Source of the DNA: Schizochytrium sp. TIO01
Lineage: Eukaryota > Protista > Bigyra: Labyrinthulomycetes
DNA length: 64,000 bases
NCBI GenBank assembly: GCA_004764695.1
Contig: SMSO01000014.1
Span: 3,963,648-4,027,647, forward strand
Reading direction: 5' to 3'
The position numbers and the translations under genes are program-made. The notes beneath the pieces are model-generated. The model was not told the origin of the DNA and made no database searches. It saw only the letters and a list, made by a program, of their open reading frames with translations. Positions 39,680 to 57,584 of this stretch are shown in pieces (positions within the stretch are counted from its first letter, which is position 1; each line of letters starts with the position of its first letter).

Positions 39680-42600
39680 ATGTCAGACCACCCAGATGTT
39701 GTCGATGCCCTTGAGCAGCTTCGGAATGGCGCTACAACATTGGAGTAAGTTAACATGGTAGTCTCGTTCGCTCGGTCGCTCGCTTGCTTGCTTGCTTGCT
39801 TTATTTGCACGGTGTTGCTTTTGTTGTTATTGTTTTGCAAGTTTATGCGATGGCTGGTTTGTTTGTTTGTTTGTTTGATGGATAGGCGGATGGATGAATG
39901 GATAAGTTGTCTGTTTGAGTGAGTATACATCCATCGAACAAAGAGCAAAATGACAACACAACAAAGATAAATGCTGAAAGCCAACCTAGATCACTCACGT
40001 CCATGCATGCATGCGTGCATCTATTGTAATATGTAACGTGTAATGTATTGCTTGCCATCATTCAATCAAATCGACAGTCTTGAAGGCAACAAAATCGGCT
40101 CAGAGGGCGCCAAGGCAGTGGCTGCGGCGCTGAAAGAGAACCGGTCGCTGACATCACTATCGTAAGTTGTCTACGCGACACCGCAGCTCGTGGACTTGTT
40201 TGTACATGATGTTTGGTTTGTTGTTTGGTGGGTGAGTCGGTGTTGTTTTGCATCTTTATGCAATCGCTTGTTTGTTTGATGGATGTATAAGTGGCCTGTT
40301 TGACTTGAGTATGCATCCATCGAACAAAGAGCAAAATGACAACACAACATAGACGAAATCCTGAAAGTCAACCTAGATCACTCACGTCTATGCATGCATG
40401 CGTGCATCTGTTGTAACATGTAACGTGTAATGTATTGCTTGCCATCATTCAATCAAATCGACAGTCTTAGAGGCAACCAGATCGGCTCACAGGGCGCCAA
40501 CGCAGTGGCTGCGGCGCTGAAAGAGAACCGGTCGCTGACATCACTTGAGTAAGTTGTCTACGCAAGACCGCAGCTCGTGGACTTGTTTGTACATGATGCT
40601 TGGTTTGTTGTTTGGTGGGTGGGTCGGTGTTGTTTTGCAAGTTTATGCAATCGCTTGTTTGTTTGATGGATGGATGAGTTGTATGTTTGAGTGAGTATAC
40701 ATCCATCCAACAAAGAGCAAAATGACAACACAACAAAGATAAATGCTGAAAGCCAACCTAGATCACTCACGTCCATGCATGCATGCGTGCATCTATTGTA
40801 ATATGTAATATGTAACGTGTAATGTATTGCTTGCCATCATTCAATCAAATCGACAGTCTTTCGGGCAACAATATAGGCAATGAGGGCGGCAAGGCAGTGG
40901 CTGCGGCGCTGAAAGAGAACCGGTCGCTGACATCACTTGAGTAAGTTGTCTACGCAACACCGCAGCTCGTGGACTTGTTTGGACATGATGCTTGGTTTGT
41001 TGTTTGGTGGGTGGGTCGTTGTTGTTTTGCAAGTTTATGCAATCGCTTGTTTGTTTGATGGATGGATGAGTTGTCTGTTTGAGTGAGTATACATCCATCG
41101 AACAAAGAGCAAAATGACAACACAACAAAGATAAATGCTGAAAGCCAACCTAGATCACTCACGTCCATGCATCTAATGTAATGTGTCATGTGTAATGTAT
41201 TGCTTGCCATCATTCAATCAAATCGACAGTCTTTCAGTAAACGGAATCGGCTTAGAGGGCGCCAACGCAGTGGCTGCGGCGCTGAAAGAGAACCGGTCGC
41301 TGACATCACTTGAGTAAGTTGTCTACGCAACACCGCAGCTCGTGGACTTGTTTGTACATGATGCTTGGTTTGTTGTTTGGTGGGTGGGTCGGTGTTGTTT
41401 TGCAAGTTTATGCAATCGCTTGTTTGTTTGATGGCTGGATGAGTTGTCTGTTTGAGTGAGTATACATCCATCAAACAAAGAGCAAAATGACAACACAACA
41501 AAGATAAATGCTGAAAGCCAACCTAGATCACTCACGTCCATGCATGCATGCGTGCATCTATTGTAATATGTAACGTGTAATGTATTGCTTGCCATCATTC
41601 AATCAAATCGACAGTCTTCGATACAACGATATCGGCGACGAGGGCGCCAAGGCAGTGATAGCGGCGCTGAAAGAGAACCGGTCGCTGACATCACTCAAGT
41701 AAGTTGTCTACGCAACACCGCCGCTCGTGGACTTGTTTGTACATGATGCTTGGTTTGTTGTTGGGTGGGTGGGTCGGTGTTGTTTTGCAAGTTTATGCAA
41801 TCGCTTGTTTGTTTGTTCGTTAGGTTGTTTGGTTGTTCGATGGATGGATGGATGAGTTGTCTATTTGAGTGAGTACACATCCATCAAACAAAGAGCAAAA
41901 TGACAACACAATAAAGATAAATGCTGAAAGCCAACCTAGATCACTCACGTCCATGCATGCATGCGTGCATCTATTGTAATATGTAACGTGTAATGTATTG
42001 CTTGTCATCATTCAATCAAATCGACAGTCTTAGAAACAACCGCATCGGCTCAGAGGGCGCCAAGGCAGTGGCTGCGGCGCTGAAAGAGAACCAGTCGCTG
42101 ACATCACTTGAGTAAGTTGTCTACGCAACACCGCAGCTCGTGGACTTGTTTGGACATGATGCTTGGTTTGTTGTTTGGTGGGTGGGTCGGTGTTGTTTTG
42201 CAAGTTTATGCAATCGCTTGTTTGTTTGATGGATGGATGAGTTGTCTGTTTGAGTGAGTATACATCCATCAAACAAAGAGCAAAATGACAACACAACAAA
42301 GATAAATGCTGAAAGCCAACCTAGATCACTCACGTCCATGCATGCATGCGTGCATCTATTGTAATATGTAACGTGTAATGTATTGCTTGCCATCATTCAA
42401 TCAAAACGACAGTCTTTATAACAACGATATCGGCTCAGAGGGCGCCAAGGCAGTGGTCGCGGCGCTGAAAGAGAACCGGTCGCTGACATCACTTGAGTAA
42501 GTTGTCTACGCAACACCGCAGCTCGTGGACTTGTTTGGACATGATGCTTGGTTTGTTGTTTGGTGAGTGGGTCGGTGTTGTTTTGCAAGTTTATGCAATC

Positions 42601-57300: not shown

Positions 57301-57584
57301 ATTTGGATTTTACTGATACTACTAGAATGGCCCGGGGGATGAATGAAATGCGCGAGGAGATCGAATTGAATAAGCAAATTCGTTCTGCAAAGACAAGAAG
57401 GACAAGACTTGAGCAGATATCTCGTGAGCTTCGTTGTATACATGTTGTGAACGATGCACTTTCTCTGCCGTTTTCCGTGAAGCGTAGTCTTCTTACACAA
57501 ACCTGGCCTGTTAACAGCTCGAATGAGCTGAGTTCAAAAGAGGACTATCTTTCTGCGCAGAAAGTAGAGCTTGATATGTTGTAA
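51385..57584 (+). CDS. Second modular LRR gene (no Roc/COR/TIR); 3' end uncertain
   Basis: Exon 1 is 51385-51449 ([21 protein letters not shown]). Fourteen intact 84-nt LRR exons start at 51739, 52094, 52508, 52969, 53358, 53771, 54171, 54561, 54965, 55387, 55772, 56157, 56559 and 56944. A TAG acceptor at 57325 would join in frame to 57326-57584, while the AG at 57292 would give an immediate stop. Confidence 0.7.
51450..57033 (+). repeat. Tandem array 2: 14 intron+LRR-exon units, including (GCTT)n at ~51469-51580 and (GATG)n at ~52717-52793
   Basis: Same repeat family as array 1 but more heterogeneous. Exons at 55387 and 55772 are identical neighbours 385 bp apart. Confidence 0.96.

Follow-up and report, generated by a model that had tools for sequence, protein, structure and literature searches.

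A 64,000-nucleotide stretch of contig SMSO01000014.1 (positions 3,963,648 to 4,027,647 of the forward strand; contig C13 below) from the thraustochytrid Schizochytrium sp. TIO01, hereafter the window, carries two genes assembled from tandem ~385-bp exon-intron units, in which each 84-nt exon encodes one leucine-rich repeat (LRR) of the ribonuclease-inhibitor (RI) type. Gene 1 continues from its LRR array into Roc, COR-A and TIR domains, and gene 2 ends in a conserved tail exon (Table 1). Both probably belong to a large superfamily of LRR genes in an Aurantiochytrium-like thraustochytrid, and we read them as immune-type sensors diversified in the germline. Members of this superfamily, composed of such ~385-bp units, are associated with ribosomal DNA (rDNA) and chromosome ends.

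Tandem Repeats Finder placed a 385-bp period at 39893-44753 (12.6 copies, 91% matches) and a second at 54753-57095. A script that scanned both strands of the window for AG + 84 nt + GT with an open LRR-like frame returned exons on the + strand only, 13 in 40078-44782 (array 1), 13 in 52094-57027 (array 2) and a single divergent one at 49718-49801. A fourteenth exon of array 2 (51739-51822) has F in place of the initial L and was missed by the first script pattern, which brings the total in the arrays to 27 (13 in array 1 and 14 in array 2). Every one of them is exactly 84 nt long and in phase 2-2, the first base completing a codon and the last two opening one, and the donors all read xx/GTAAGT or GTGAGT. 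When each exon was searched separately, single exons matched Pfam LRR_6, the RI-type model. The initial annotation, made from the sequence without database searches, had described 27 intact 84-nt exons in phase 2-2 with one RI-like LRR each, and both the script and the LRR_6 matches bear it out. Units measure 373-461 bp across both arrays, and intron lengths run from 271 to 377 nt in 14 length classes. Exons contain no indels, compared with 19 distinct intron gap runs; the chance of finding none would be ~0.009 if indels were spread uniformly. Stop codons are likewise absent from the near-randomised codons described below, where ~5 would be expected. Given the phase 2 exon end and the GTAAGT donor, a retained unit intron (40162 onwards) leads to an immediate in-frame TAA, so intron retention would truncate the protein after a whole number of repeats. 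Perfect microsatellites occur in gene 2 introns, (GCTT)28 at 51469-51580 in intron 1 and (GATG)20 at 52716-52794 in a later one, and every unit intron holds shorter GATG and TTGT runs. A typical unit intron (42112-42412) contains a local hairpin in which GTTTGTTTGATGGATGGATG pairs with CATCCATCAAACAAAG. Folding gave no support for the unit intron as a structured RNA (minimum free energy z-score -1.55; 7/100 shuffles fold equally well), and no Rfam families were found within the arrays.

Variation among the 27 exons is concentrated on five codons per repeat. Codons 2, 3, 5 and 8 show a nucleotide diversity of 0.56-0.66 per site, and the two exon bases belonging to the split junction codon reach 0.49, compared with 0.078 in the remaining exon and 0.073 in the introns of both arrays (0.028 in array 1 only). 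Introns therefore vary ~8-fold less than the five surface codons, and the earlier claim that the introns of the ~385-bp tandem units are more uniform than the variable part of the exon holds. On the motif L-x-x-L-x-L-x-x-N-x-I-G-x, variation falls on x5 (the junction codon), x7, x8, x10 and x13; judged from the motif, these residues would sit on the strand and ascending loop that form the concave ligand face of an LRR. The same pattern extends to 181 exon instances in loci fetched from the same genome, which carry 138 different 8-residue heads: positions 2, 3 and 5 have entropies of 3.1-3.6 bits, and no other position exceeds 1.3 bits. The remaining 23 codons show nonsynonymous and synonymous diversities (pN and pS) of 0.044 and 0.076. 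Distances between heads do not correlate with distances between adjoining introns (Spearman -0.09 and -0.05).

In gene 1, the array closes with a specialised capping repeat. Its 13th LRR exon ends DENHVLQEI, and an equivalent last repeat is present in every paralog inspected. Roc and COR-A then occur together in one open reading frame, the combination that defines ROCO proteins. The GTP-binding motifs are intact in translation (P-loop GKGGAGKT; switch II motif DxxGQ as DYGGQE), and sequence matches in the PDB comprised archaeal (Methanosarcina) and bacterial (Chlorobium) Roco proteins and the Roc-COR of LRRK2. Among Pfam models of nucleotide switches, only the Roc/Ras superfamily matched; no NB-ARC or NACHT domain of a STAND NTPase was found, and AAA_22 stayed below the cut-off. 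An AlphaFold2 (AF2) model of the TIR domain built from 16 paralogs (predicted local distance difference test (pLDDT) 88) has AbTir, RPS4 and SARM1 as its nearest structures (Foldseek probability 1.00). The Cat1 TIR profile alignment (HMMER) spans the C-R-x-E-F motif but shifts it by a 2-residue gap. The predicted protein, in which neither a signal peptide nor a membrane segment was seen, is most likely cytosolic. The sensor-switch-effector domain order and the hypervariable codons of the predicted binding face, both proposed at the outset, are thus retained.

Evidence for splicing came from runs X1, X18 and X2, which belong to three studies with three organism labels and were available as contigs. 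All three cover the body of gene 1, with depth nil or near nil in most of the 47700-49899 flank, whereas run X22 covers every bin and so behaves as DNA. Joint 44782->44887, which connects the terminal LRR exon to the exon encoding Roc-COR, is present in one contig each of X1, X18 and X2 (shorter side 32-41 letters) and absent from the DNA-like X22; with this joint in three RNA-like runs, the proposed in-frame splicing of array 1 onto Roc-COR is supported. X18 also contains the exact joint of exon 11 to exon 12 (44024->44314). Many further exon-exon joints connect the constant tail of one exon to heads foreign to the window locus, indicating that paralogous arrays are spliced and expressed too. 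One spliced contig with the head LFRNQ was considered as an array 2 transcript and rejected, as the genome has this head at 16 places.

As assembled, the window copy of Roc-COR runs into an in-frame TGA (46907-46909), and its TIR domain lies in another frame, giving 682 + 195 codons. This split is confined to the window copy among the Roc-COR-TIR paralogs, of which at least 18 (43-100% identical) each form one open frame of 845-911 codons. Those inspected, over 1.5 kb upstream per paralog, all carry gene 1-type LRR exons. The break falls in a run of five A (Table 1). All covering contigs of X1, X2 and X22 insert an extra A after 46900, none has the 5-A form, and an X1 contig runs unspliced through 46831-46971. 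A 74-nt intron at 46872-46945 that would restore the TIR frame was ruled out by the open paralogs, the 6-A twin described below and the unspliced RNA-like contigs. Six A in the twin and in all covering runs, together with the open paralogs, indicate that the expressed form is a continuous Roc-COR-TIR frame, and we consider a homopolymer assembly error a somewhat better explanation of the five A than a real frameshift. The TIR domain that the initial annotation placed after Roc-COR is therefore present, and in one frame in at least 18 paralogs, but out of frame in the window as assembled. Beyond gene 1 lie three divergent relics of RI-type LRR exons, which are also conserved (87-92%) downstream of three other Roc-COR-TIR paralogs; their depth in X18 and X2 is zero.

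Array 2, first described as a second LRR array, belongs to a gene distinct from gene 1, which begins with a start exon of its own and ends in a conserved C-terminal tail exon. Its exon 1 and promoter region are 83% identical to the start of gene 1. An LRR-only protein ending at the TAA of an unspliced donor was set aside once an in-frame acceptor to the conserved tail exon was identified. The genome contains 101 matches to the tail exon, at 33-100% protein identity; nearly all are open, and many sit directly behind 385-bp arrays. In the window, TAA (57582-57584) takes the place of a Glu codon of the relatives, and the last 19 residues of the family can still be read beyond it (57585-57641). 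Intact tail copies with 98% identity lie at C10:16163-18339 and C30:1724623-1724877, and the C10 copy has a doubled LFRNQ head at the same distance from the tail as in the window. These near-identical intact tails indicate an intact twin elsewhere for gene 2, as for gene 1. The tail matched nothing in Pfam or the Atlas (SLATT_4 at E 0.16 is noise), and its AF2 model consists of two long helices at low confidence (predicted template modelling score 0.34). A profile search of 1.84 billion representative proteins yielded three true relatives, all MMETSP transcripts. In the open reading frame P0092, the end of a 385-bp-type intron is followed by one LRR exon and the tail, in a paralog, and in P0084 divergent RI-type LRRs are joined to the tail. 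Together, they identify LRR-plus-tail as a transcribed gene type.

A near-identical second copy of the gene 1 region allowed the idea of reprogramming to be examined. Contig C30:1-13517 is a 99.68% twin of window 34690-48191, and the copies differ at ~28 events, ~15 in the 4.9-kb array and ~13 in the flanks, which span 8.6 kb. Homopolymer differences within the initial 600 bases of C30 make up half of the flank events, and differences overall are 2-3 times denser in the array than in the flanks. A GT>AA change is found twice, at corresponding positions in two units, and so is one 7-bp indel; these recurring differences look like conversion between units. All 13 exons stand in identical order in the twins, and two residues differ across the 13 exons; exchange has thus been too slow to reorder cassettes since the duplication. 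C30 starts without telomere repeats and contains 1266 N letters in its first 40 kb, and the homopolymer indels near its start suggest a low-quality contig end or a haplotype fragment. Between loci, the arrays have evolved in concert. The last array intron is 96-98% identical between the window and paralogs on other contigs, whereas the Roc-COR coding DNA of those paralogs is only 85-91% identical to the window and the heads all differ. With a 387-base query made up of an array 1 intron and the exon that follows it (40162-40548), at least 398 matches at ~90-93% were found in the genome. Apart from the binding-face codons, homogenisation across chromosomes has therefore gone further in the arrays than elsewhere in the gene. 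Heads uncoupled from introns, together with an intron identity between chromosomes above that of Roc-COR, support cassette exchange on an evolutionary scale.

Downstream of gene 2, the window reaches an rDNA unit; no 5S gene was found in the window at the Rfam gathering score. The position of array 2 upstream of the 18S gene fits the description of LORE-TEARS Group 0 in Aurantiochytrium limacinum, ~385-bp units in arrays of ~9 located upstream of 18S near chromosome ends and published as spacers without similarity to known sequences (bioRxiv 10.1101/2023.06.15.545109). In contrast to that description, the units examined here are LRR exon-intron arrays that are open, match LRR_6 and are spliced, and array 1 shows the same unit within an LRR-Roc-COR-TIR gene further from the rDNA. 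The genome has TTAGG telomeres, and contig C3, which has both ends, carries 385-bp arrays 20-30 kb from each. Contig C13 was not among the contigs with telomere ends in a telomere pattern search, and the internal window site is thus only putatively subtelomeric. An inverted copy of the window locus lies 37-50 kb further along C13, which suggests that this contig probably joins two chromosome ends. Inverted pairs of an array plus Roc-COR-TIR occur inside C13 (~4.00/4.07 Mb and 5.67/5.72 Mb) and also in the 9.8-Mb C30. The long contigs C13 and C30 may represent head-to-head joins of chromosome ends; in the published assembly, the 26 chromosomes have a mean size of ~2.4 Mb. Elsewhere in the window, a 110-nt Rfam tRNA match (33814-33923, 47 bits) suggests an intron-containing tRNA gene; ARAGORN (bacterial mode) found none there.

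Table 1. Features of the two LRR genes and their surroundings, in window coordinates
Feature	Position	Strand	Details
Gene 1 exon 1	39680-39744	+	ATG + 21 codons + 2 bases; donor GA/GTAAGT; in-frame stop upstream
Gene 1 LRR exons (n=13)	40078-44782	+	Starts 40078, 40465, 40857, 41230, 41615, 42028, 42413, 42786, 43171, 43556, 43941, 44314, 44699 (last = specialised capping repeat)
Intron, last LRR exon to Roc-COR exon	44783-44886	+	104 nt, GT..AG; acceptor 44886/44887
Gene 1 large last exon	44887-47463	+	Roc, COR-A, TIR; stop 47461-47463
Roc	~45026-45724	+	Pfam Roc 2.7e-18; P-loop 45044-45067
COR-A	45929-46186	+	Pfam COR-A 1e-11
5-A run breaking the COR-TIR frame	46896-46900	+	6 A in C30 twin and in reads
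TIR	46993-47349	+	Pfam TIR_2 9e-14
Candidate catalytic Glu codon	47248-47250	+	C-R-x-E-F motif; Glu invariant in 16 TIR paralogs
Divergent RI-type LRR exon relics (n=3)	48896-48997, 49126-49236, 49718-49801	+	3' flank of gene 1, before gene 2
Gene 2 exon 1	51385-51449	+	Paralog of gene 1 exon 1; next intron holds (GCTT)28
Gene 2 LRR exons (n=14)	51739-57027	+	Starts 51739, 52094, 52508, 52969, 53358, 53771, 54171, 54561, 54965, 55387, 55772, 56157, 56559, 56944
Gene 2 tail exon	57326-57584	+	In-frame acceptor 57325/57326 after 298-nt intron
18S	61379-63165	+	Rfam
5.8S	63253-63403	+	Rfam
28S start	63554- (window end 64000)	+	Rfam

Among the closest published counterparts are the LRR-ROCO genes of the brown algae Ectocarpus and Saccharina, proposed as immune receptors diversified by exon shuffling, in which each 72-nt phase-2 exon encodes one 24-residue LRR, the concave face is under positive selection and splice variants occur (PMC3341825, PMC11378527). 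The precedent for one LRR per exon that the initial annotation named is thus documented. Both systems belong to stramenopiles and share N-terminal LRRs, fixed-length phase-2 exons ahead of Roc-COR and variation on the concave face. By contrast, the thraustochytrid exons measure 84 nt and encode 28-residue RI-type repeats (LRR_6), and the protein continues into a C-terminal TIR domain, whereas brown-alga genes stop at ROCO. The present genes also consist of satellite-like 385-bp units with introns homogenised across chromosomes, and they reside beside rDNA at chromosome ends in a unicellular heterotroph. A TPR-ROCO-TIR protein noted in Chondrus crispus (PMC11378527) shares the C-terminal TIR and an N-terminal repeat sensor, but its repeats are TPR rather than LRR and an exon-cassette array was not reported. 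The full domain set (LRR_6, Roc, COR-A and TIR_2) is found in Hondaea fermentalgiana gene models P0002, P0003, P0004 and P0006 (NCBI, automatically named LRRK2 or NOD2). These have the same domain order, are 43-45% identical over Roc-COR-TIR and share the long Roc insert and the C-R-x-E-F motif, but contain only ~4-6 LRRs, which are much less alike. The LRR-Roc-COR-TIR architecture also occurs in some bacterial proteins, and no protein near-identical to gene 1 was present in the protein collection. The initial suggestion that such receptors are undescribed in Labyrinthulomycetes consequently holds for the literature searched, in which we found no description of LORE-TEARS as genes or of LRR-ROCO-TIR receptors in thraustochytrids, but not for databases, in which the Hondaea models carry the architecture. 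What is already known is the exon-cassette ROCO principle, from brown algae, and the domain architecture, from Hondaea gene models; new are the RI-type 84-nt cassette, its combination with a C-terminal TIR, the homogenised satellite-like unit, the rDNA and chromosome-end site and the unicellular host.

More distant systems share the logic of the protein or of its cassettes. As in plant TIR-type nucleotide-binding LRR receptors (TIR-NLRs), SARM1 and bacterial TIR defence proteins, a repeat sensor is combined with a nucleotide-dependent oligomerising switch and a TIR domain; here, however, the switch is a Ras-like Roc-COR GTPase and not a STAND NB-ARC/NACHT ATPase, and the domains come in the reverse order, the TIR being C-terminal. 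A 2026 preprint describes conserved-Glu TIR catalysis as widespread in eukaryotes and mentions thraustochytrid TIRs in one clade. Lamprey variable lymphocyte receptors (VLRs) likewise use LRR cassettes with a variable concave face and draw on many near-identical genomic cassettes, but their germline genes are incomplete and assembled somatically, whereas the genes described here are complete and no somatic assembly was seen.

We hypothesize that the concave LRR face, with its five hypervariable codons per repeat, binds a non-self or danger ligand. Binding would alter the nucleotide or dimer state of Roc-COR, which would in turn bring TIR domains together, and the TIR, with a Glu at the putative catalytic position, would consume NAD+ or make a nucleotide signal. 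Gene 2 would represent a second family type, with a helical tail that is probably oligomerising. Diversity would arise in the germline over evolutionary time. The arrays at chromosome ends would undergo tandem duplication, unequal exchange and short-tract gene conversion, both internally and with one another, and introns and scaffold codons would thereby evolve in concert, while selection would keep the binding-face codons different.

Several observations weigh against this interpretation. Ligand binding, GTPase switching, TIR catalysis and an immune role are all deduced from domain families. The COR-B half of the switch has no Pfam model match, and the ~225 residues between COR-A and TIR are conserved among paralogs and in Hondaea. 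The Glu of the C-R-x-E-F motif is likely catalytic like the W/C-x-x-E Glu of TIR NADases, an assignment made from the motif. The RNA status of X1, X18 and X2 is the tool's guess and draws its support from the depth pattern, and the runs consist of contigs that break in the constant part of each exon and are silent on isoforms, skipping and expression level. At the four hypervariable codons, pN (0.61) and pS (0.54) are both saturated, and their ratio, held to 1.1 by saturation, is uninformative alone; the case for diversity-maintaining selection is carried instead by the ~8-fold excess over introns and silent sites. Finally, both window genes are broken as assembled, gene 1 by a 1-nt frameshift and gene 2 by a stop in the tail, and near-identical intact twins of both exist elsewhere in the genome. 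Taken together, the anatomy of a sensor-switch-effector protein is well supported, and its function is plausible.

A hypervariable LRR face could also serve a non-immune gene family, in self/non-self or mating recognition or in environmental sensing. ROCO proteins serve a wide range of functions, several stresses elicit a response from the ROCO genes of brown algae, and the second family type ends in a helical tail without a known effector domain. We nevertheless consider this unlikely. An LRR array joined to an oligomerising NTPase switch and a conserved-Glu TIR is the build of known immune sensors, the closest TIR structures are enzymatic immune TIRs, and family size, chromosome-end location and birth-and-death evolution (broken copies) are typical of pathogen-driven families.

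The immune-type reading with germline diversification must also be weighed against programmed diversification, in which cells or clones reshuffle the ~400 cassettes in the manner of VLR or var genes, or choose exons by regulated splicing. The symmetric exon phase keeps any exon combination in frame, units at different chromosome ends are amply similar (91-98% identical) for ectopic exchange, heads vary independently of their flanks, twins show conversion-like differences, and brown-alga ROCO genes of the same build have splice variants (PMC11378527). Even so, such a programme seems improbable, as the 99.7% twins have kept the same exon number and order, with two residues different across 13 exons, and the germline genes, in contrast to those of lamprey VLRs, are already complete from ATG to stop; among joints specific to the locus, none was seen to be rearranged or to skip an exon, though contigs are poor at showing such events. 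The reprogramming by recombination or splicing that had been proposed for this locus therefore stands as cassette exchange over evolutionary time, and programmed reshuffling or exon choice within cells or clones is unsupported. In its strongest form, the idea casts the ~400 homogenised LRR cassettes at chromosome ends as an exchange pool from which clonal lineages would change LRR-Roc-COR-TIR or LRR-tail specificity in few generations, through mitotic ectopic recombination or gene conversion, regulated exon choice, or both, and we give it little credence. If true, the pool would be a protist counterpart of antigen-receptor or var/VSG-type diversification, in immune sensing. That the arrays are non-coding chromosome-end spacers with incidentally open exons, as the publication of LORE-TEARS as anonymous repeats proposed for chromosome-end maintenance and the Group 0 position of array 2 might suggest, is scarcely credible given 27 open exons with canonical splice sites, indels in introns only, variation on five codons, LRR_6 matches, spliced joints in RNA-like runs, MMETSP transcripts and attachment to Roc-COR-TIR or a conserved tail exon.

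Germline-diversified, immune-type sensing thus remains the probable reading of both genes. The findings assign a coding function to repeats published as anonymous chromosome-end spacers and extend the exon-cassette ROCO idea to another LRR class. They also reveal a unicellular heterotrophic stramenopile with a large receptor-like family, comprising at least 18 LRR-Roc-COR-TIR genes, ~100 LRR-tail genes and ~400 cassettes. A TIR output would link these genes to the NAD-based immune signalling of bacteria, plants and animals. The host is culturable, transformable and known for giant virus-like elements, and both the sensor-switch-TIR logic and the rate of cassette exchange are testable there.

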